Below are positions 28 to 11,279 of a stretch of DNA of 64,000 bases, in pieces. The stretch's first letter is position 1. Each line of letters starts with the position of its first letter. The DNA lies in the sequence record OR805292.1. One strand, given 5' to 3'. Under the pieces are notes generated by a model, which ran no database searches, was not told the DNA's origin, and saw only the letters and a program-made list of their open reading frames with translations. Both the position numbers and the translations under genes were made by a program.

Positions 28-1596
28 ATGGCAGCAGAAGATTATTTAATTAAAAAGGCTTTTAAAAAGGTCTTATACACAGACAAACAGATAGAAGAAT
101 TAAAAAAATGCATGGATCCTATAAATGGTCCTATGTATTTTATGACAAATTTTGTCTACATTCAGCATCCTACAAAAGGTCGTCTGTTATTTAAACCGTT
201 TCCATACCAAGTAGGTTTATTAGAAGCGTTTCACAATTATAGATATTCTATAGCTATGCTAGGAAGGCAGCTAGGTAAATCTACTGTAGCTGGATCTTAT
301 TTACTATGGTACGCAATGTTCGTACCTGATAGTTTTATTTTAGTTGCATCGAAAACAGGCGGCGACGCCAAAGAGATTATGGGTCGAATTCGGTTTGCAT
401 ATGAAAGTTTGCCAGATCATATTAGGGCAGGTGCAATTACTTATAATAAACATAGTATAGAATTTGATAACGGATCTAAGATTAAATCAACTACTACTAC
501 CGAAAATACAGGTAGGGGAATGTCCATTTCGCTAGTATATTTAGATGAAATGGCATTCGTGCCGTACAATGTGGCTATAGAAATGTGGACTTCTCTATCA
601 CCCACATTATCCACTGGCGGTAAATGTATAATAACTTCTACGCCTAATACCGACGAGGATTTGTTTGCCGATATATGGCATAATGCAAACAAATTAACTG
701 ACGAATACGGAAATGAACGAAAAATAGGTGCTAATGGATTTAAGCCGTTTAAAGCTACTTGGAAAGATCATCCTGACAGAGATGAAAATTGGGCAACAAT
801 AGAGCGTGAAAAGATAGGGGAAGAAAGATTTCGTAGAGAACACGAAGTGGAGTTTATTTCTTTTGAAGAAACTCTTATAAATTCTATAAAATTAAATCAA
901 CTAGAATCTAAAACTCCTATAAGAAAAACAGGCCAAGTCCGTTGGTATGAAGAAATAAAGCCGACAAATACATATGTTGTTGGATTAGATCCATCTATGG
1001 GAGCAGGCGGCGACAATGCTGCAATACAAGTGTTAGAATTACCTACAATGAAACAAGTAGCTGAGTGGCAGCACAACAGAACACCAGTTGAGGGTCAAGT
1101 TAGGTTGTTAAATGAAATACTTACAGAAATACAAAACGCAGGTGTAGTAGAATTATATTGGTCGCTGGAATCTAATAATTTAGGAGAAGCTGCATTAGTG
1201 GTAATACGTGATACAGGAGAAGAATATTTTCCTGGAACATTTTTGCATGATCCTGTAAAACAAGCAGGGGCGAATAGTCGTAAAAGACAAGGTTTTCTTA
1301 CTACTAATCGGACAAAAATAGAAGCATGTTCTAGATTGAAATCCTTAATAGAAAATAATAAAATAAAAATATCATCTTCTGCATTGATTAGTGAATTAAA
1401 GAATTATGTACACAGAGGAGCCACGTTTGAAGCTCGACCGGGAACTACAGACGATTTGGTGTCTGCACTTATATTAACATTAAGGATGACTCAGTTTATT
1501 GCATTATGGGATGATAATACAAATGGTGCAATCAGTGCAAGTATAGAAGTCGTCGATGAGGATGACGATAGTATGCCCATGCCTTTCTTATTTTAA
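28..1596 (+). CDS. terL: Terminase large subunit (T4 gp17-like)
   Basis: Walker A GRQLGKST, Walker B VYLDE, motif III STPN, RNase H-like nuclease GLDPSMG...D and TDDLV. Start ATG 28 assumed; it could lie upstream of the window. Confidence 0.95.
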   Translation: MAAEDYLIKKAFKKVLYTDKQIEELKKCMDPINGPMYFMTNFVYIQHPTKGRLLFKPFPYQVGLLEAFHNYRYSIAMLGRQLGKSTVAGSYLLWYAMFVPDSFILVASKTGGDAKEIMGRIRFAYESLPDHIRAGAITYNKHSIEFDNGSKIKSTTTTENTGRGMSISLVYLDEMAFVPYNVAIEMWTSLSPTLSTGGKCIITSTPNTDEDLFADIWHNANKLTDEYGNERKIGANGFKPFKATWKDHPDRDENWATIEREKIGEERFRREHEVEFISFEETLINSIKLNQLESKTPIRKTGQVRWYEEIKPTNTYVVGLDPSMGAGGDNAAIQVLELPTMKQVAEWQHNRTPVEGQVRLLNEILTEIQNAGVVELYWSLESNNLGEAALVVIRDTGEEYFPGTFLHDPVKQAGANSRKRQGFLTTNRTKIEACSRLKSLIENNKIKISSSALISELKNYVHRGATFEARPGTTDDLVSALILTLRMTQFIALWDDNTNGAISASIEVVDEDDDSMPMPFLF

Positions 1597-1598
1597 AC

Positions 1599-1604
1599 TA
1601 AATA
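1599..1604 (+). promoter_or_regulatory. T4-type late promoter TAAATA
   Basis: TAAATA 24 nt upstream of ATG 1628; the motif recurs before many putative virion genes. Confidence 0.6.
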
Positions 1605-1627
1605 TAGTTAAATTGGATTTAGATTTA

Positions 1628-3118
1628 ATGAAACTATTTGAAGTGTTTACTTTATATGAAGATAAAGCAGAACTGATTGTGAAAAATCAAGGACCCAACC
1701 TCCTTACTGCTGCTAAAAATTATGGATCGAATATTCGTACGGCTGAAGAAATAATGAATGTTCTTAAGCGTGCAGATCCTACATCTAATCAGAAATATTT
1801 GCAATGGATTACTAATAGATTTATTGCAGGTGAATTTAGATTAGAAGATACTAATAGAATAAGGGCAGAACTTATATCATTCGAAAGATATAAACGTGTT
1901 TTACCGAAAAAAGATATAAATCAGTATAAAACACTAGGAGAATTGTATGCAGTAATTGACCCATTAAATGACGCAGCAACAGGCAACGATCTGATTGGTG
2001 TATCTAATAAACAAGTTAAAAAGCATGCATATAATGCCAAACGCCAAGAATTAATTTCGTCTGGTCAAGCAGATGTAATTTATAAAGGCCAAGAAGGAAT
2101 GCTAGTTAATCCCAAAACAGAAGAAGCAGCAATATTCTTCGGTCAAGGAACTAGGTGGTGTACCGCAGCAACTAGTAGTGATAATATGTTTAGTCACTAC
2201 CATAGTCAGGGACCGTTATATACTTGGTTAGGTTCGGATGGATTCAAAGCACAATTCCATTTAGAAACTAATCAATGGATGGATTCAAAAGACGAGCCTT
2301 TAGACAACGCTCAGATGTCTAAGCTATTGTTAATTCCTATAATTAAAAAATTGTACGACGACGGTATAATTAAATCTGAGAAATCACTTGTCGGCGATCG
2401 TGGCGGCTTCGATGACGAATATGATAATAGACTATCGGATGACTATTATTTCGACATGTGGGCTGATCGAAAATACCGTATCAAACGACATATTGAGAAA
2501 CACGGCATGTCTGAGTATTTAATAGATACACTTTCTGTTAAAGATCCTTTATTACCGTTGTTTGTTTTACCAGAACACTCAAAATACCCTGCGTCGAAAT
2601 CACTCGATGATTATTTTTTAAAATTATCCAAAATAGAACCGCTCGACCAATATAAAGAGATAAATGGGTATTTTGAGAGTGATATGTTACTTCGATTAAC
2701 TAGATACCTTGAAGATTCTACAGGGTCTCATTCTAAATCTTTAGATGATGCTGGATTTAATTTTGTTCGTCGATTACTGGACATAGGCGGAAAGGATTTT
2801 GATTTAATAATATCGAACTATCTAAAACATGTAGCTGAGAATTCTAAAACAAAACAATACCTTCTGTCTAATCTTCCGTTAGCTGTTGAGATTGCTAATT
2901 CGATCGAATGGCCAGAACTTATGACAGCAATTGAGCATGAGCTTAGCAATGCTAAAACACCAAAAGAAGAGAACGATGCAATAAAACTAGGCAGTGATTT
3001 AATGTTTAAATCTAATAGCCTGCCTGTATCTAAATGGTTTATTAATTTACTTAAAACTACAGATGCAGGTAAACGATACTTATCATCATTACCTGAGTAT
3101 GACAACACAAAACAATAA
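1628..3118 (+). CDS. Hypothetical protein with FGQGTRWCTA (PcfJ-like) domain, putative head-packaged protein
   Basis: Long ORF; start moved to ATG 1628 (MKLFEVFTLYE leader) after the late promoter; G-T-x-W-C domain common in jumbo phages. Confidence 0.6.
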   Translation: MKLFEVFTLYEDKAELIVKNQGPNLLTAAKNYGSNIRTAEEIMNVLKRADPTSNQKYLQWITNRFIAGEFRLEDTNRIRAELISFERYKRVLPKKDINQYKTLGELYAVIDPLNDAATGNDLIGVSNKQVKKHAYNAKRQELISSGQADVIYKGQEGMLVNPKTEEAAIFFGQGTRWCTAATSSDNMFSHYHSQGPLYTWLGSDGFKAQFHLETNQWMDSKDEPLDNAQMSKLLLIPIIKKLYDDGIIKSEKSLVGDRGGFDDEYDNRLSDDYYFDMWADRKYRIKRHIEKHGMSEYLIDTLSVKDPLLPLFVLPEHSKYPASKSLDDYFLKLSKIEPLDQYKEINGYFESDMLLRLTRYLEDSTGSHSKSLDDAGFNFVRRLLDIGGKDFDLIISNYLKHVAENSKTKQYLLSNLPLAVEIANSIEWPELMTAIEHELSNAKTPKEENDAIKLGSDLMFKSNSLPVSKWFINLLKTTDAGKRYLSSLPEYDNTKQ

Positions 3119-4718: not shown

Positions 4719-4747
4719 TTGACAAATAGATAACTGCATTATATAAT
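4719..4747 (+). promoter_or_regulatory. Sigma70 promoter of ssb
   Basis: TTGACA (4719-4724), 17 nt, TATAAT (4742-4747): perfect consensus. Confidence 0.9.
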
Positions 4748-4837: not shown

Positions 4838-5824
4838 ATGGCTTCTCTTGCTGAACTACGTCAAAAATTAAAAGATCAAGAAACAAAACGTGGCACAAAA
4901 TCATCTGGCAGTGCAGATAAAAGTAATTTCCCATTCTGGGACATGAATGAAAACGACAGTGCTACTGTAAGATTTCTTCCTGATGCAAACACTGATAATA
5001 CCTTTTTCTGGGTAGAAAAACAACAAATTAAAATTCCATTTAGTGGCATTGTAGGTATGAATAGTAAACCTACAGTTGTTACTGTACCGTGTGTAGAAAT
5101 GTGGGGGGAATCTTGCCCTATTCATCAAGAAATCCGTCCGTGGTTTAAAGATCCTTCGTTAGAGAAATTAGCGCGTACTTATTGGAAGAAACGTTCTTAT
5201 ATTTTCCAAGGACTTGTTCGTAAGTCACCCCTTGTAGAACAAGAACTACCGGAGAATCCTATTCGCAAATTCACATTCGGAAGTCAGATTTTTAATCTAG
5301 TTAAATCGTCTCTATTAGACCCCGAAATGGAAAACATTCCCACTGATTATTTAAATGGTACTGATTTCCAGATAACTAAATTAATGAAGGGCCAATATGC
5401 CGATTACGCTACATCTAAATGGGCAAGGAAAGAATCTTCGTTAACTGAAGAAGAATTCCAAGCAATCCAAACATATGGTCTGTATGATTTAAGTAAATTT
5501 TTACCTGCTAAACCTGATGCAGAAGCATTAGCTGCTATATTCGAGATGTTCGAAGAATCAGTAGAAGGTAAAGAATATGATCCGCAGCGTTGGGGGAAAT
5601 ACTATCGCCCTTACGGGGTTGAAGTTCCTACTAATACTTCTGTAAGTGTACCTGTATCTAAACCAGAACCTAAGACTACGGTATCTAGTTCTTCAGTTAT
5701 AGAAGACGATAACGATGATCTTCCTTGGGAAGATACTACTAAACCCGTAGAGCCTGTCAAATCTGCTTCTAATGCGCAAGATATAATTGCGCTCATCCGC
5801 GCCCGCCAAAACAGCGGCAACTAA
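4838..5824 (+). CDS. ssb: Single-stranded DNA-binding protein (T4 gp32-like)
   Basis: TVRFLPD, PC...CP Zn ligands, YWKKRSY, DY..SKW motifs, acidic DDNDDLPW tail, position before uvsX. Confidence 0.9.
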   Translation: MASLAELRQKLKDQETKRGTKSSGSADKSNFPFWDMNENDSATVRFLPDANTDNTFFWVEKQQIKIPFSGIVGMNSKPTVVTVPCVEMWGESCPIHQEIRPWFKDPSLEKLARTYWKKRSYIFQGLVRKSPLVEQELPENPIRKFTFGSQIFNLVKSSLLDPEMENIPTDYLNGTDFQITKLMKGQYADYATSKWARKESSLTEEEFQAIQTYGLYDLSKFLPAKPDAEALAAIFEMFEESVEGKEYDPQRWGKYYRPYGVEVPTNTSVSVPVSKPEPKTTVSSSSVIEDDNDDLPWEDTTKPVEPVKSASNAQDIIALIRARQNSGN

Positions 5825-5829
5825 ATAGG

Positions 5830-5858
5830 GAGAGGGGATCGCTGATCCCCTCTCTTTA
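5830..5858 (+). terminator. Intrinsic terminator after ssb
   Basis: GAGAGGGGATC-gct-GATCCCCTCTC followed by TTT. Confidence 0.75.
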
Positions 5859-5931
5859 ATATAACCTAAAATAGCCAAAAAGTACAACTACAATGTTGGA
5901 AGGACGGCAGTATTATAAAAAAGGACATTTT

Positions 5932-6177
5932 ATGACAAAACCATTCGATATTTCTAAATTTAGAAAAGATATTACTAAAAGTATCACTGGCATTAGTACA
6001 GGATTTAATGACCCAACTATTTGGATTAGTACCGGCAACTATACTCTTAATTATCTCATTAGTAGCGACTTTAATAAAGGCGTACCTATGGGTAAAGTAA
6101 CTATGTTTGCTGGCGAGTCGGGTTGTTTGCCTGAAACTGCTAAAGTGAAAATTAGACTATCTAAGAAGCAATCTTAA
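5932..6177 (+). CDS. uvsX: UvsX/RecA N-terminal extein (64 aa) fused to 17-aa split-intein N-fragment
   Basis: ISTGNYTLNYLIS...GKVTMFAGESG, then CLPETAKVKIRLSKKQS-stop (Cys1 at 6124); AAGGA SD before ATG 5932. Confidence 0.92.
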   Translation: MTKPFDISKFRKDITKSITGISTGFNDPTIWISTGNYTLNYLISSDFNKGVPMGKVTMFAGESGCLPETAKVKIRLSKKQS

Positions 6178-6186
6178 CTGTCCAGT

Positions 6187-6226
6187 GTCTCCGTCGAGGA
6201 TAAATACTTTTATCTAAAACGGAGAC
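6187..6226 (+). promoter_or_regulatory. RBS-sequestering hairpin with embedded late promoter, upstream of the homing endonuclease
   Basis: GTCTCCGT 6187-6194 pairs with ACGGAGAC 6219-6226 (covers the GGAGA SD); inner stem 6198-6204/6209-6215; TAAATA at 6201-6206. Confidence 0.75.
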
Positions 6227-6229
6227 TTT

Positions 6230-7663
6230 ATGGGAAATTACAATGTTCTTTCTACAAAAAACTTTAAGAAGCTATGTAATGAGTTAAACATAGTAACGAT
6301 ATCAGAAAAGTACATTTCTGATATACGTAAGATAGAAGATTCTGCTAAGAGCAAAGTGGATTCTGCATCTCAGCGTATGATATTAACTATGATAACTGTG
6401 AAAGTTCCCGACTTATATGATGCATATAACAGATACTATCAGCTCAGAACAGATGGTATTAGTACAAAAACTCAAGACAGTATTTCTTATATTTTTGGAA
6501 AAGACTTCCTCGAATCTGTTAATTTACTAATCAGTAATAGATATAAAACTGCATTCCGTAAAGGAATGACAGTGGAAGAGGCATTTATAACACGTAATAA
6601 AGACTTTTCCAATAATGGTGTGTATTATAACCAGATGACTGATAAGCAAAAGAAACGTTTATCATTATTGCTTAGTGTGTATACACCAGAAAGGTTGGAG
6701 TTTTATAAAAAGACAATTTCGTTTTTTATTAAGTTAGATTTGACTAATTATGCAGGAAGAATGAAAAGACTGATGAAACTGGGATCTAGTACGTCTTTAT
6801 ATGCTAGCGTATTACGGTATGGTAAATCTGTCGGAAAAAGCACACATTCATCTGTATCTGCGGTAAAGAGAAACTATTTGCCTACTTCGATACAATATTG
6901 GATGGCAAAGGGGTTTGATGAAGATACTGCATTAGTGAAGATAAACGAACATCAACAGAAAGCAAGTGCCATGTCTTCCAAAAAACTAAAAGGCACTAGC
7001 GAATACTCTGTTCGATCAGTTGCATATTGGATTAAAAACGGGTATAGCGAAGAAGAGGCAAAAGGGAAAGTATCTAATATACAGAATACTTGGAAAAATG
7101 TATCTCAAGAAGAGCGTGATCGAAGAATAGAATCGTGGATGACTACAATGAGTCTTAAAACAGACGAGGAGAAATCTTTGATAAACCTTAAAAAAACTCA
7201 CAGCCCGGAAGGGATAATGGCAAGGACAAATTGCGATTATGATATTGCATTTAAGCAAAGCGTTGATTTTTTTAAGAAACGAAATAATTCTTCTAAAGTA
7301 TCTCAAGAACTATTTTGGGGAATTGCCGAGGATATCGATACCGATGGAGTTTACTTTTCTGAACTAAACTACGAATACCCTGTTATGGGGAAAATAGTAG
7401 ATTTCTATGATTCTAAAAGCAAAACAGTAATCGAATTTTATGGAAACTTTTGGCATGCAGATAGTACATATACTGATGACACACTGATATATGGAAAAAC
7501 TGCTAAAGAAATAAGAGAATCGGACATTTACAGAGAAACGTTAATTAGATCATCTGATTTGGTTAGTGATTTTATAGTAGTTTGGGAAAAGGACTTTAGG
7601 AAGAATCCGAAAGAAACAATTAAAAATTTAGTTAATATTTTAAATAATAAAAGGAAATTTTAA
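6230..7663 (+). CDS. Free-standing Vsr-like (PD-(D/E)XK, DUF559-type) homing endonuclease inside the fractured uvsX
   Basis: C-terminal VDFY...VIEFYGNFWH...D...VVWE motif, YW..G..E..A repeats, located between the split-intein halves. Confidence 0.8.
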   Translation: MGNYNVLSTKNFKKLCNELNIVTISEKYISDIRKIEDSAKSKVDSASQRMILTMITVKVPDLYDAYNRYYQLRTDGISTKTQDSISYIFGKDFLESVNLLISNRYKTAFRKGMTVEEAFITRNKDFSNNGVYYNQMTDKQKKRLSLLLSVYTPERLEFYKKTISFFIKLDLTNYAGRMKRLMKLGSSTSLYASVLRYGKSVGKSTHSSVSAVKRNYLPTSIQYWMAKGFDEDTALVKINEHQQKASAMSSKKLKGTSEYSVRSVAYWIKNGYSEEEAKGKVSNIQNTWKNVSQEERDRRIESWMTTMSLKTDEEKSLINLKKTHSPEGIMARTNCDYDIAFKQSVDFFKKRNNSSKVSQELFWGIAEDIDTDGVYFSELNYEYPVMGKIVDFYDSKSKTVIEFYGNFWHADSTYTDDTLIYGKTAKEIRESDIYRETLIRSSDLVSDFIVVWEKDFRKNPKETIKNLVNILNNKRKF

Positions 7664-7666
7664 TAA

Positions 7667-8938
7667 ATGGAATACATCGAAAAGGAAGTAACAGTTAGTG
7701 AACTGAAGTCTCTCTACAGTAGTAATGAATACGAAATTGAGTTAGACACACCAGATGGCTGGCAAAAACTGGGATCTTGGTTCGATAAAGGCCCTCTTAG
7801 TATGGTGACGGTAGAAACGCAGGATGGGTTAGTTACTAGATGTGCAGTAAACCATATGATCGAAGTGGTAGACGGATCGGAAACTTTTTGGACACTTGCA
7901 AAAGACTTGTACGAAGGCCAACAAGTGCTTACTGTAAACGGTGTCTCAACAATTAGTTCTGTAACTGAAAGTGGCATCGAAGAATGTTTCGATTTCGAAA
8001 TACTCCACGAAAATCATCGTTACTATGGTGATGGATTCTCTTCTCACAATAGTGGCAAATCGTATATAGTATCAGGAAACATTGTAAAAGATGCACAAGA
8101 AAAGGGAATTTTTGTTGTATTACTTGATTCAGAAAATGCACTCGACGAATCTTGGTTACATGCACTAGGTGTTGACACCGGACCGGAAAAAATGTTACGC
8201 ATCTCTGTATCGATGATAGATGATGTAGCAAAAATTATTAGTGATTTTGTTAAAGATTACAAGACTAATTATGCCGAACTACCTAACAATGATCGACCAA
8301 AGGTGCTTTTTGTTATTGACTCGCTCGGAATGTTATTGACACCAACGGAAACTGCACAATTTCAAAATGGTGATATGAAAGGAGATATGGGCAGGAAAGC
8401 AAAACAATTAAAAGCATTGATTTCTAACTGTACAAATATGTTCGGCAACTTAGACATAGGCCTTGTTTGTACTAACCATACATATGCATCTCAAGATTTA
8501 TTTCAGCCTGACGCTGTAATTTCGGGTGGCAGCGGCGCAGTCTATGCGGCGTCAATTGTAGTGGCAATGCAAAAGTTAAAGTTAAAAGAAGACGAAGCAG
8601 GTAATAAAATTTCTGAAGTAGCTGGCATTCGTGCAGTATGTAAAGTTGTGAAATCTCGATATGCAAAGCCGTTTGAGACAGTAAAAGTAAATATTCCATA
8701 TGATACAGGTATGAGTCCAATATCGGGTCTATTTGACTTGTTTGAAAAAACAGGTAAACTTGTAAAACAAGGCAATAGATATAAGTACATAACCAAGGAT
8801 GGTACTGAAATGCTGTATTATAGGAAAGAATGGAATGATTACGATAAACTAAAAGTAATTATGAATGAATTTACAGACGAAGACCTAGGCAATGTCGTAG
8901 AAGTGGAAGAGGGTCATTTAGAAGAGTTCGATGAATAA
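7667..8938 (+). CDS. uvsX: 128-aa split-intein C-fragment fused to UvsX/RecA C-terminal extein (295 aa)
   Basis: Block B CAVNH, block F CFDFEI, terminal HN (8045-8050) followed by Ser; then SGKS, LLDSENA, VIDSLG, TNHTY, ISGGSG RecA motifs. Confidence 0.93.
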   Translation: MEYIEKEVTVSELKSLYSSNEYEIELDTPDGWQKLGSWFDKGPLSMVTVETQDGLVTRCAVNHMIEVVDGSETFWTLAKDLYEGQQVLTVNGVSTISSVTESGIEECFDFEILHENHRYYGDGFSSHNSGKSYIVSGNIVKDAQEKGIFVVLLDSENALDESWLHALGVDTGPEKMLRISVSMIDDVAKIISDFVKDYKTNYAELPNNDRPKVLFVIDSLGMLLTPTETAQFQNGDMKGDMGRKAKQLKALISNCTNMFGNLDIGLVCTNHTYASQDLFQPDAVISGGSGAVYAASIVVAMQKLKLKEDEAGNKISEVAGIRAVCKVVKSRYAKPFETVKVNIPYDTGMSPISGLFDLFEKTGKLVKQGNRYKYITKDGTEMLYYRKEWNDYDKLKVIMNEFTDEDLGNVVEVEEGHLEEFDE

Positions 8939-10766
8939 ATTATGCGAAACAGATCGTATTAATATTATCAAATTACACTTCGATGATTTAAAATCTGTAT
9001 CTGAATTAAAGCAAATATACGGAGTCTCTTATGATGTCATTAAAACCATCATAAGAGATGAAACGAATCGTCTACCGTTGCAAGAAACTGATATAAAAAT
9101 TTTGAAATTTAAAAAACTTGTTTCAAAGGAGTTGTTATTTGAATTACATGTAATTAAAAAACAATCATTTAATGAAATAAGAAAGACTTATAAGATTAAT
9201 GAACTTCATTTAAAACAAGTGTTTAATGATTACGGAATACCAATTGAAAAGTGTTTATATACTGCTACTAACAAGAAGCGTAAAACAAAAAAGCCTGAAG
9301 ATTTTACTAAAGACTTTTTCGAACACTTAGTATATAACGAAAGACGAACAATTAGTTGGATAAAAAATAATTATAACTTTAATTATGAAGAACTAAAACA
9401 TCATTTAACACATTTAAAAATCGATTATACTAATTCGTTGCCACCTGCTGTAAAACATCAACAAGATAAAATATCTAGAGAAACCCTAGCAGAAGAATTA
9501 AAAATTAAATCTATTGTTGATATAATAAATGAATACGGAATTTCGAGAACTTATGTAGAAAGCGTTATAAAAGAATACAATATACAGTATTTTACAAAAC
9601 CGAAACATTCTATATTAAGTGGTAAAGAATCAGAAATTTATCGGATGTATTATGATGAATGTATGACTACATACCAAATAGCAGAAAAATTGGGAGTATG
9701 TCAATACACCATATGGAAAATAATGGCAGATAACGGATGGAAAACACGAGAACCGATTAAAAAAATTGATTTGATTTGGAATGATATAAAAGAAGAAGTT
9801 GTTAAATTAATAGACAACGGTTATACATTAGCTGCTTTATGTGAAAAATACGAAATAACATCTATTACTGAAAAGTTAATAGAAGAAGGTATAAAATATA
9901 CAAAGGGAAATATTTCTTCTGGTCATGCAGAAATATCTGAATATGTGCGTTCATTGGGATTTAATGTAATCGACAATGATCGTACTATTATATTTCCGCG
10001 AGAAATTGATATTTTTATTCCCGAACTTAACATAGGAATAGAATACAACGGATTATATTTTCATAGCACACGAACAGAAGGAAATGTAACAAAGCATAGA
10101 GAAAAATATAGCATATGTAAACAAAAAGGTATTCGTTTAATACAAATTTTTGAAGATGAATTTATTCATAAGAAAGAACTAGTAAAGAGAAAATTAGCGC
10201 ACATTTTAGGAAAATCTAATAATAAATGTTATGCAAGGAATTGTATAGTTAAAGAAATATCGGTAGCAGACAAACGAAATTTCTTTAAAAAATATCACAT
10301 ACAAGAAGATTCTGCATCCTCGTATGCATATGGATTATATTATGATAATGAATTGGTTTGTGCTATGTCTTTTCTTAAAAAGAAGAAATGTACAGAATTA
10401 GTTAGATATGCATCTTCTATGCACGTGATAGGCGGATTTTCTAAGTTGTTGAAATATTGTATTAATAATAACAAAATAGATGTTATAAACACCTATGCTG
10501 ATCTCAGATGGTCGAATCCGACAAATAATGTATATGTAAACAATGGGTTTGATATACTGTATGAGACTGATTTTAATTACACTTATGTGAGTAAAGAGGA
10601 TTTTTCAAAAAGGCTTAATAGGCAAAAATTTATGAAACACAAGTTGAAAAACATTTTATCAGATTTCGATAAATCATTAACAGAAGAAGAGAATATGAAA
10701 AATAATGGATTTTATCGAGTATACGATGCTGGCCATTTAAAATTGCAATATAAGGTTAATAAATGA
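8931..10766 (+). CDS. Putative homing endonuclease: HTH repeats, Vsr-like nuclease and C-terminal Hef/Mom-like (GNAT-fold) domain
   Basis: EIDIFIPELNIGIEYNGLYFHS...LIQIFEDE nuclease motif; C-terminal ELVRYAS...GGFSKL...TYADLRWS...VY...GF. Confidence 0.7.
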   Translation: MNKLCETDRINIIKLHFDDLKSVSELKQIYGVSYDVIKTIIRDETNRLPLQETDIKILKFKKLVSKELLFELHVIKKQSFNEIRKTYKINELHLKQVFNDYGIPIEKCLYTATNKKRKTKKPEDFTKDFFEHLVYNERRTISWIKNNYNFNYEELKHHLTHLKIDYTNSLPPAVKHQQDKISRETLAEELKIKSIVDIINEYGISRTYVESVIKEYNIQYFTKPKHSILSGKESEIYRMYYDECMTTYQIAEKLGVCQYTIWKIMADNGWKTREPIKKIDLIWNDIKEEVVKLIDNGYTLAALCEKYEITSITEKLIEEGIKYTKGNISSGHAEISEYVRSLGFNVIDNDRTIIFPREIDIFIPELNIGIEYNGLYFHSTRTEGNVTKHREKYSICKQKGIRLIQIFEDEFIHKKELVKRKLAHILGKSNNKCYARNCIVKEISVADKRNFFKKYHIQEDSASSYAYGLYYDNELVCAMSFLKKKKCTELVRYASSMHVIGGFSKLLKYCINNNKIDVINTYADLRWSNPTNNVYVNNGFDILYETDFNYTYVSKEDFSKRLNRQKFMKHKLKNILSDFDKSLTEEENMKNNGFYRVYDAGHLKLQYKVNK

Positions 10767-10963
10767 TTACAGATGTTGAAGCAATAAATGAAATTTGGGC
10801 TGCCGTGCGACCATATATTAAGTCATCTGAGCGCATTCATGCAGCGGATGCGTTTATAGAAGTTTTAGATGAATACGGAATGCTTGATGTAGATATTCAA
10901 ATGTTTGAAAAAGAACTTAAAATAGCAGCAAAAACACATTTAGGTGAAGCAGATGACGACTAA
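10763..10963 (+). CDS. Hypothetical protein
   Basis: 66-aa ORF coupled to neighbours. Confidence 0.55.
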   Translation: MITDVEAINEIWAAVRPYIKSSERIHAADAFIEVLDEYGMLDVDIQMFEKELKIAAKTHLGEADDD

Positions 10964-11279
10964 TTTAGAATTTAGTGACGAATTTCTATCAACTGTATCG
11001 TCGTTGAAAGCCAATATAGCATCCAAAAATAAAGATGCTGTCATAGAACAATTAGACAAATTGTTAGATATGGTAACAAAAGATATGAATGCGGTTATAT
11101 GGGTAATACAACCTGAAAATATTAATAACCTACATATACTATGTTCTGATTCATTTAATATTCCTATTAGTCAATTTAGACTAAAACGAAGAATACCGTC
11201 AAAATCTCAACGAGCTCATTTATTTTTAAAAGTAATTAGGATTGCACTTGCTGGAAAAGAAAATGAACAATTGGTATAA
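10944..11279 (+). CDS. Hypothetical protein
   Basis: 111-aa ORF in the operon. Confidence 0.5.
   Translation: MKQMTTNLEFSDEFLSTVSSLKANIASKNKDAVIEQLDKLLDMVTKDMNAVIWVIQPENINNLHILCSDSFNIPISQFRLKRRIPSKSQRAHLFLKVIRIALAGKENEQLV

Follow-up and report, generated by a model that had tools for sequence, protein, structure and literature searches.

The window considered here, a stretch of 64,000 nucleotides (nt) from sequence record OR805292.1, contains a gene for UvsX, a RecA-type recombinase, that is interrupted within the ATP-binding loop (the Walker A motif, or P-loop). This uvsX is very probably a fractured gene, in which a VidaL-type class-1 intein lies between the GESG and SGKS parts of the loop and is split after its second β-strand by a free-standing Vsr-like endonuclease gene. 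The arrangement is a known kind of element, namely an orthologue of the split intein VidaL within a fractured gene of the type described by Dassa et al. (2009, PMC2677866). Over positions 5800-9000 the window agrees fully (100% identity) with nt 5800-9000 of Pseudomonas phage Cassandra (OR805292.1), a PA5oct-like jumbo phage (Arenbergviridae, Wroclawvirus), and this region is 99.4-99.8% identical to ten other PA5oct-like records. Ten distinct isolates were compared (Cassandra, Paride, Deifobo, Ettore, PA5oct, MIJ3, PAC2, Callisto, 30-2 and 30-3), which were independently sequenced and come from at least four stated countries (Switzerland, Spain, Japan and Thailand).

The locus consists of three open reading frames (ORFs), all on the plus strand. 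The first (5932-6177) encodes the uvsX N-extein (5932-6123), a segment of 64 amino acids (aa) running MTKPF...VTMFAGESG that ends with the first half of the P-loop and is matched by the PHROG 97 UvsX profile (E=3e-13). It is followed by the N-terminal intein half, IntN (6124-6177), which consists of the 17 residues CLPETAKVKIRLSKKQS and a TAA stop codon at 6175-6177, and which contributes the nucleophile Cys1 and strands β1-β2. The last ORF (7667-8938) has its own ATG at 7667 and begins with the C-terminal intein half, IntC (7667-8050), whose 128 residues (MEYIEKEVTV...GFSSHN) include block B (CAVNH), block F (ECFDFEI) and block G (SHN). IntC is continued by the uvsX C-extein (8051-8938), 295 residues and a stop, starting from Ser+1 (SGKSYIVSGN...) and matched by Pfam RecA (2e-10) and PHROG UvsX (2e-46). 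An ORF of 477 aa lies between these two coding pieces. A sequence-only reading of the same DNA had described uvsX as cut by a split intein with a 17-residue IntN and a 128-residue IntC, and the ORFs and peptides are exactly as it claimed.

Joining of the exteins would give a predicted UvsX of 359 aa (64 + 295) with the P-loop GESGSGKS rebuilt, and with VTMFAGESGSGK as the predicted tryptic junction peptide. Such a restored Walker A motif and 359-aa recombinase had likewise been proposed from the sequence, and the junction proves to be exact. On the PHROG UvsX profile the N piece covers positions 14-84 and the C piece 83-445, and on the solved UvsX structure 9GBG the N piece matches residues 26-64 and the C piece residues 65-291, placing the junction at 64/65. 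Intact uvsX genes, put forward in the sequence-only reading as a point of comparison, are found in the related phages 121Q and CBB. Across the site the intein-free UvsX of 121Q reads MFAGESGSGKSFIVSGN, that is ...MFAGESG/SGKSFIVSGN..., and that of CBB reads ...VFAGESG/AGKSYIVSGN...; the window exteins (MFAGESG and SGKSYIVSGN) align to both without a gained or lost residue. Because the alignments to 121Q, CBB and 9GBG leave no gap, the exteins abut exactly. Over its length the C-extein is 56-61% identical to CBB and 121Q UvsX.

The stop codon at 6175-6177 is identical in the six isolates that were translated, and the IntN region is without a variable site in all ten. The whole arrangement (stop, 52-nt spacer, 1434-nt ORF and separate ATG of IntC) is common to the ten isolates. 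The stop as a sequencing or assembly error, with a contiguous intein behind it, was raised in the sequence-only reading as the outcome that would overturn it, and contiguous versions of this intein do exist in other phages. This candidate was rejected: ten genomes from different laboratories and countries share the stop and the layout, and what separates the halves is a 1.5-kb gene and not a single base, so that an error of this kind can for practical purposes be discounted. The start of the N piece is annotated at ATG 5893 (94 aa) in the Cassandra and Paride records and at 5932 (81 aa) in the other eight isolates; a 1-nt indel of an A at 5917 separates the same two phages from the rest. The start at 5932 appears the better one, judging from its ribosome-binding site (AAGGA) and its closer fit to homologues. 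For IntC, a sequence AAGGAA is located 11-16 nt 5′ of the ATG, within the 3′ end of the endonuclease gene. A scan of positions 5700-9100 with Rfam gave no match, hence no group I intron or known RNA was recognized there.

The residues expected of a splicing intein are all present: Cys1 (6124-6126, directly after GESG), the block B His, the block F Asp, the terminal His-Asn and Ser+1. In IntC, residues H63, D109, H127, N128 and S129 (Ser+1) are invariant across 35 aligned relatives and align with the same residues of the solved VidaL, DnaX and DnaE inteins. The block B Thr is replaced, with Ala60 at the aligned position, and the tripeptide CLP opens almost all related IntN sequences. The best match of IntC in the PDB is VidaL (6VGV/6VGW; E=2e-36), with 66 of 123 aligned residues identical (54%); behind it come DnaX, DnaE and further inteins, all with weak scores. 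Identity between IntC and TerL inteins from cultured phages is only ~31%. The resemblance to VidaL suggested in the sequence-only reading is therefore real and extends to the same ESG and SGK exteins. For IntN, CLPETAKVKIRLSKKQS and the VidaL sequence CLPKEAVVQIRLTK(K)G match at 9 of 15 positions. The VidaL IntN is printed within a construct as ESG/CLPKEAVVQIRLTKG (supplement of PMC10264447, a machine-read text with letters dropped), and the full 16-aa sequence was taken from locus L008 of the IMG/VR database. A phmmer search of the PDB with the last 30 aa of the N piece gave no match, the query being too short.

VidaL is a cysteine-dependent intein with a 16-aa IntN that is split after strand β2 (the S1 site) and is reported to trans-splice with a half-time of ~1 min at 37 °C (PMC13014065). 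The split point in the window aligns with that of the VidaL locus L008 and of 42 other split loci, which bears out the atypical geometry claimed earlier: the break falls after ~17 residues, at the same S1 position as in VidaL. Contiguous relatives show no residues missing from the two halves; for example, the protein P0025 reads CLPKSAKIKVRLTKKEERQISVGELK....

A sequence of events can be proposed for the locus. Two polypeptides would be made, UvsX(1-64)-IntN(17 aa) and IntC(128 aa)-UvsX(65-359), and docking of IntN on IntC would complete the Hint fold. Cys1 and Ser+1 would then perform protein trans-splicing, yielding the 359-aa UvsX with an intact GESGSGKS loop and two excised intein pieces. 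We infer splicing in vivo, along with cleavage by the endonuclease, its target and the timing of expression; for splicing by the window intein the grounds are the conservation of the catalytic residues and the activity reported for VidaL. Taken singly, each fragment has only part of the ATP-binding loop, and for this reason recombinase activity should depend on splicing, so that recombination in these phages would presumably depend on it as well.

In six isolates the extein variants were checked by codon, and all 30 are synonymous (11 of them N-extein and the other 19 C-extein variants); a 20th variable site of the C-extein (8707) appears when all ten isolates are included, the codon-level count referring to the six. 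Since all 30 checked variants are synonymous, both exteins are under strong purifying selection. This rules out a uvsX pseudogene, one form of the proposal that the pieces do not splice. The other form is a non-covalent complex held together by the intein halves, in which 145 intein residues would be left interrupting the P-loop. In favour of the proposal, no PA5oct-like phage has so far been seen to splice this protein, and annotations list two separate 'UvsX-like' or 'RecA-like' proteins. Set against this, all splicing residues are kept (Cys1, block B His, block F Asp, His-Asn and Ser+1) and the closest characterized relative splices fast, and an absence of splicing is thus judged very improbable. 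In PA5oct the orthologue of the C piece is gp210, which the GenBank record marks as seen in ESI-MS/MS (tandem mass spectrometry with electrospray ionization), showing that the C piece is produced in that phage.

Two cysteines of IntC other than the nucleophile, Cys59 (7841-7843) and Cys107 (7985-7987), are also invariant in the 35 relatives; a disulfide between them is conceivable, as is a catalytic or redox function. It has to be considered whether the split intein also acts as a regulatory switch, gating recombination through the timing or amounts of the precursors or through redox at these cysteines, neither of which is a canonical splicing nucleophile. The endonuclease gene and the hairpin that precedes it could uncouple expression of the two coding pieces. 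Contiguous, split and re-fused forms, however, interchange freely among the relatives, suggesting that the split is a by-product of endonuclease invasion, and a regulatory function in addition to splicing is regarded as rather unlikely.

The putative free-standing homing endonuclease gene (6230-7663, plus strand) encodes 477 aa, with a predicted C-terminal Vsr-like nuclease domain at about residues 353-477. The N-terminal region is helical, with repeated YW..GY..EA..V..Q modules, and is presumed to bind DNA. Homologues with 29-40% identity are found between the intein halves in 25 IMG/VR loci, the VidaL locus included. An alignment of 20 family members shows E382, D391, E402, G405, H409, D432 and W452 to be invariant, among which D391, E402, H409 and D432 are candidate catalytic residues. 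A family profile compared with the PDB has Vsr mismatch endonucleases as its best matches, and in this alignment D391 corresponds to Asp51 of Vsr, F407/W408 to Phe67/Trp68, H409 to His69 and D432 to Asp97, with E402 at the position of Phe62. A Glu at the Phe62 position is the family signature of the Vsr-like endonucleases of fractured genes (PMC2677866). Vsr-related Pfam domains are matched by several of the 20 family members (MTES_1575 in five, DUF559 in three), the window protein being in neither set. The AlphaFold (AF2) model of the C-terminal 125 residues has a predicted local distance difference test score (pLDDT) of 96.8, and its Foldseek matches include, besides Vsr, Vsr-like nucleases such as PvuRts1I and AbaSI.

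Several results weigh against this assignment. Searches of Pfam and PHROG with the 477-aa window protein gave no match, and the score of the family profile against Vsr is weak (E about 0.13). The Foldseek comparison of the nuclease domain model with Vsr (template modelling score 0.56-0.58, probability 0.84, E 0.2) is not significant alone, nor is any Foldseek match with the full-length model, in which the long helical N-terminus dilutes the match. On the combined evidence, the protein is nevertheless accepted as a putative Vsr-like homing endonuclease of the fractured-gene type, in line with the sequence-only reading, which had placed a homing endonuclease between the halves. The endonuclease is expected to serve the element and not the phage, and to cut element-free uvsX alleles in mixed infections; in repairing the break, the cleaved genome would receive a copy of IntN, the endonuclease gene and IntC together with short stretches of flanking extein. 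No paralogues of IntC, of the endonuclease or of a second, Hef-like endonuclease encoded downstream of uvsX were found within the window.

A predicted RNA hairpin precedes the endonuclease gene (6187-6226, plus strand), with arms GUCUCCGU (6187-6194) and ACGGAGAC (6219-6226). It folds into an 8-bp stem and an inner stem with a minimum free energy of -24.9 kcal/mol (z=-3.75), and none of 200 shuffled sequences was as stable. The Shine-Dalgarno sequence GGAG (6221-6224) sits in the 3′ arm, and the loop carries GATAAATAC (6199-6207), which resembles a T4 late promoter; the loop element GATAAATA matches TATAAATA at 7 of 8 positions. Leaders of homologous endonuclease genes from at least ten other loci have the same fold with different stem sequences, that is, compensatory change, as read from individual folds, and TAAATA is invariant in all 12 aligned leaders. 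On the opposing side, RNAalifold found no consensus for these 12 leaders, in which variable loops shift the 3′ arms out of register, and TATAAATA and ATAAATAC are not enriched in the window, leaving T4-type late promoters unsupported as a general feature. This layout has been described both for the endonucleases of fractured genes and for mobE of phage Aeh1: read-through transcripts conceal the ribosome-binding site, and transcripts initiated at a late promoter within the loop expose it (PMC2677866). The hairpin in the window is predicted to cover the ribosome-binding site of the endonuclease. Translation of the endonuclease would then probably be held down by pairing of the hairpin with the Shine-Dalgarno sequence, and relief may come late in infection, from a transcript starting at the promoter-like TAAATA in the loop.

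The intein belongs to a large family. A search with IntC returned 113 protein clusters in several length classes: split forms of ~415-435 aa that start with IntC, contiguous forms of ~490-520 aa, and a class whose members terminate in a further intein lying downstream. A scan of IMG/VR recovered 80 loci, with gp32 directly 5′ in nearly all of them, as in the window. The 74 classifiable loci comprise 31 with a contiguous mini-intein (133-158 aa), 25 split with an endonuclease homologue, and 18 split with a spacer of 29-226 nt. Related loci have an IntN of 15-19 aa with the motif CLPxxAxVxxR. In locus L008 the IntN reads CLPKEAVVQIRLTKKG and the IntC is identical to PDB VidaL at 119 of 119 compared positions; the gene order is that of the window (gp32, uvsX-N/IntN, endonuclease homologue with 35% identity, IntC/uvsX-C). 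VidaL's own natural locus, as identified by this full match, therefore shares the window architecture, endonuclease homologue included. The sequence-only reading had called the geometry rare, which does not hold for nature, given 113 protein clusters and 80 IMG/VR loci that carry this intein family; its further suggestion of a new orthologue in genomic context stands, in the form of a diverged VidaL orthologue inside a fractured uvsX.

Some contiguous inteins retain an in-frame Met at the position where split IntC starts (L027, with CLPESAKVRICIKNKEL-MEIKEVTV, L020 and L047-L050, and the proteins P0064 and P0013). The contiguous intein of L027 reads ...IKNKEL-MEIKEVTV.... These sequences suggest that in some contiguous forms split halves may have been re-fused after loss of the endonuclease gene. 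Resolution in the intein tree is too low for split and fusion events to be counted, and well-supported branches force only two or three state changes, but the tree does place near-identical inteins together whether or not they have the endonuclease gene. Decayed endonuclease genes are seen in relatives at L007 6741-6991, L010 3286-4387 and L018 300-692 (a 74-aa remnant, a frameshift and a truncation). Such decayed or missing genes fit a cycle of homing and decay.

Close relatives of the intein among 50,697 deposited phage genomes fall into two groups only, the 11 PA5oct-like records and Salicola phage SCTP-2, and among the cultured phages of this collection the split form is confined to the PA5oct-like phages. 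SCTP-2 gp204, annotated as hypothetical, is a UvsX with two contiguous inteins. The second uvsX intein, at ...ISGG/C...HN/SG(F/Q)(I/V)YA, also occurs in IMG/VR loci L064-L077 and proteins P0002, P0006, P0032 and P0095 (in SCTP-2, L092 3243-5213). It is contiguous in some cases and canonically split in others, giving a three-piece uvsX with endonuclease ORFs in both gaps; in the window the site is intact (ISGGSGAVYAAS). A related IntC is fused to a DnaB-type helicase at its P-loop (...SSHN/SGSGKS), with an endonuclease gene of the same family 5′ of it (L009 11282-12816 and L010 8688-10222; P0110, P0111 and P0113). With a relative of IntC at the P-loop of a DnaB-type helicase, the family therefore targets the Walker A loops of more than one ATPase.

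The diversity of the ten isolates was compared over 14.6 kb aligned around the locus, and a tract of low diversity was found at 6112-8155. The tract begins 12 nt before the end of the N-extein, spans IntN, the hairpin, the endonuclease gene and IntC, and runs 105 nt into the C-extein. Within its 2044 bp there are two variable sites, both singletons in the endonuclease gene, against ~50 expected at the local rate of ~25/kb and ~85 at the regional rate of 41.6/kb; the Poisson probability of this deficit is 4e-34 at the regional rate and an estimated ~1e-19 at the local rate. The three longest gaps without a single-nucleotide polymorphism in the whole 14.6-kb comparison all lie within the tract. 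Elsewhere, variable sites number ~20-32 per kb in the genes from gp32 to orf15 and 79-89 per kb in terL and a 5′ structural gene. The gene orf2 (1562-3118, hypothetical, adjoining the large terminase) has 365 variable sites per kb among the ten isolates, which looks like replacement by a diverged allele in some of them.

Most simply, the composite element would have spread by homing, recently and through genomes that had already diverged, taking short co-converted flanks with it. For the predicted cutting of element-free alleles the tract is indirect evidence, at the level of the population. Low diversity could also arise if variation was imported into the flanks from diverged element-free relatives while the element, for which no homologous donor was available, stayed uniform; the element may then be old and immobile. 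The flank variation is indeed patchy and common to differing subsets of isolates, as recombination would give, and orf2, at its 365 variable sites per kb, shows outright allele replacement. Furthermore, the phage collection holds no element-free Wroclawvirus and hence no natural recipient allele, which speaks against recent homing. The edges of the tract, on the other hand, fall inside the exteins (12 nt on the 5′ side and 105 nt on the 3′ side), as in co-conversion, and not at the edges of the insertion, and the endonuclease gene keeps an uninterrupted ORF and every conserved catalytic residue. The Hef-like gene downstream of uvsX is likewise inserted relative to CBB and 121Q, yet its diversity is ordinary (19.7 variable sites/kb). 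Imported variation is accordingly regarded as an unlikely source of the pattern. Under either account, element-free relatives must exist or have existed recently. A tentative suggestion is that homing of the element is still under way in the present-day Wroclawvirus population.

The Hef-like homing endonuclease gene (8931-10766, plus strand) is a neighbour of the element outside the intein. It encodes 611 aa with several helix-turn-helix domains, a match to PHROG 3339 (5e-95) and a weak match to MTES_1575, and it has an 8-nt overlap with the uvsX stop codon. This gene and two small ORFs (10763-11279) part uvsX from a uvsY-like gene, two genes that are adjacent in 121Q and CBB. In metagenomic loci Hef-like homologues are encountered at varied places around uvsX, and once inside the second uvsX intein (L064 8853-9626). 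An hhalign comparison with the Vsr-like nuclease domain gave a weak similarity (E=0.003, probability 10%), and a common family is not claimed. The surrounding genes, gp32, uvsX, the uvsY-like gene (a label taken from the PAC2 annotation) and a uvsW-like helicase gene, form a T4-type recombination module. A consensus sigma-70 promoter with a perfect TTGACA-17-TATAAT is present 5′ of gp32 (4719-4747), and an 11-bp GC-rich palindrome or hairpin between gp32 and uvsX (5830-5854) may be a terminator or attenuator.

In existing records the three ORFs are labelled 'UvsX-like recombinase / hypothetical protein / UvsX-like recombinase', 'RecA-like protein (x2)', or all hypothetical. The omics paper on PA5oct makes no mention of an intein, homing or UvsX, and reports only sigma-70-like promoters; in the MIJ3 paper PolB is the only protein for which a split intein is reported. 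Literature linking UvsX inteins, VidaL or atypically split inteins to PA5oct-like phages was not found, a provisional result given incomplete coverage. In ten published jumbo-phage genomes the annotation of the uvsX pieces, labelled hypothetical or as two recombinase-like proteins, can be corrected.

What the analysis adds beyond the sequence-only reading is the natural context of VidaL, the size of the family and its three states, the assignment of the endonuclease and hairpin, and a sweep-like signature in cultured phages. VidaL is among the very few fast split inteins with an IntN short enough for peptide synthesis, and until now it was a metagenomic sequence only. The window intein, being 54% identical to VidaL, might be orthogonal to it, and the survey adds more than 100 variants to mine. 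With a cultured phage and a laboratory host, the natural role of the intein becomes directly testable. To our knowledge, the spread of fractured-gene elements has until now been argued mainly from metagenomic fragments; the present data suggest recent movement of such an element through natural phage isolates. If active homing were true, PA5oct-like phages grown on P. aeruginosa PAO1 would offer, for the first time, a natural system for such elements that is genetically tractable. It would then be possible to address the retention of an atypically split intein in an essential recombinase, a possible gating of recombination-dependent replication by splicing, and the cycling of fractured genes among contiguous, split with endonuclease, split without endonuclease, and re-fused states. 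The findings are useful for the engineering of inteins and for phage biology concerned with mobile elements, and are not surprising in kind.

Among known systems the closest is VidaL, which has been put to use in protein semisynthesis and with which the window intein has in common the UvsX P-loop insertion site (ESG/SGK), the split after β2 and the Cys1/Ser+1 chemistry. It differs from VidaL in having an IntN of 17 aa instead of 16 and an IntC of 128 aa instead of ~124 (a 3-residue insertion and a 1-residue gap), and ~46% of the residues differ; its source is cultured mesophilic P. aeruginosa phages, whereas VidaL is metagenomic. The window endonuclease also has an extra N-terminal extension of ~100 aa when set against the VidaL system. 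The inteins AceL-TerL and GOS-TerL, which come from phages or metagenomes, are likewise naturally split and pair a long IntC with a short IntN, in their case of 25-37 aa (PMC13014065). Their host protein, however, is the large terminase, they are split at S2 after helix α1, and there is no close sequence similarity.

Contiguous UvsX mini-inteins (SCTP-2 gp204 and the 31 IMG/VR loci) belong to the same family and occupy the same P-loop site, the SCTP-2 intein being 52% identical over IntC, but they are made as one polypeptide with an intein of 133-158 aa and no endonuclease gene; SCTP-2 differs further by its second intein at the ISGG/SG site, which is intact in the window. The fractured genes of Dassa et al. 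(2009, PMC2677866; gp41-1, NrdJ-1 and IMPDH-1 among others) resemble the window locus in having ordered halves on one strand with a free-standing endonuclease between them, a Vsr-like core (predicted in the window) with an extra invariant Glu, and a hairpin with a late-promoter-like TAAATA 5′ of the endonuclease. In 15 fractured-gene loci the 3′ end of the endonuclease gene overlaps the downstream intein half (PMC2677866). The window has no such overlap (TAA at 7661-7663, ATG at 7667, a 3-nt gap), a point against its placement among them; the overlap is seen in relatives such as L014 and is a frequent and not a defining feature of the family. In the fractured genes described earlier the split lies at the canonical site and leaves a long IntN beside a short IntC, and uvsX is not among their listed host genes, whereas the locus in the window is a uvsX split at the S1 site with an IntN of 17 aa.

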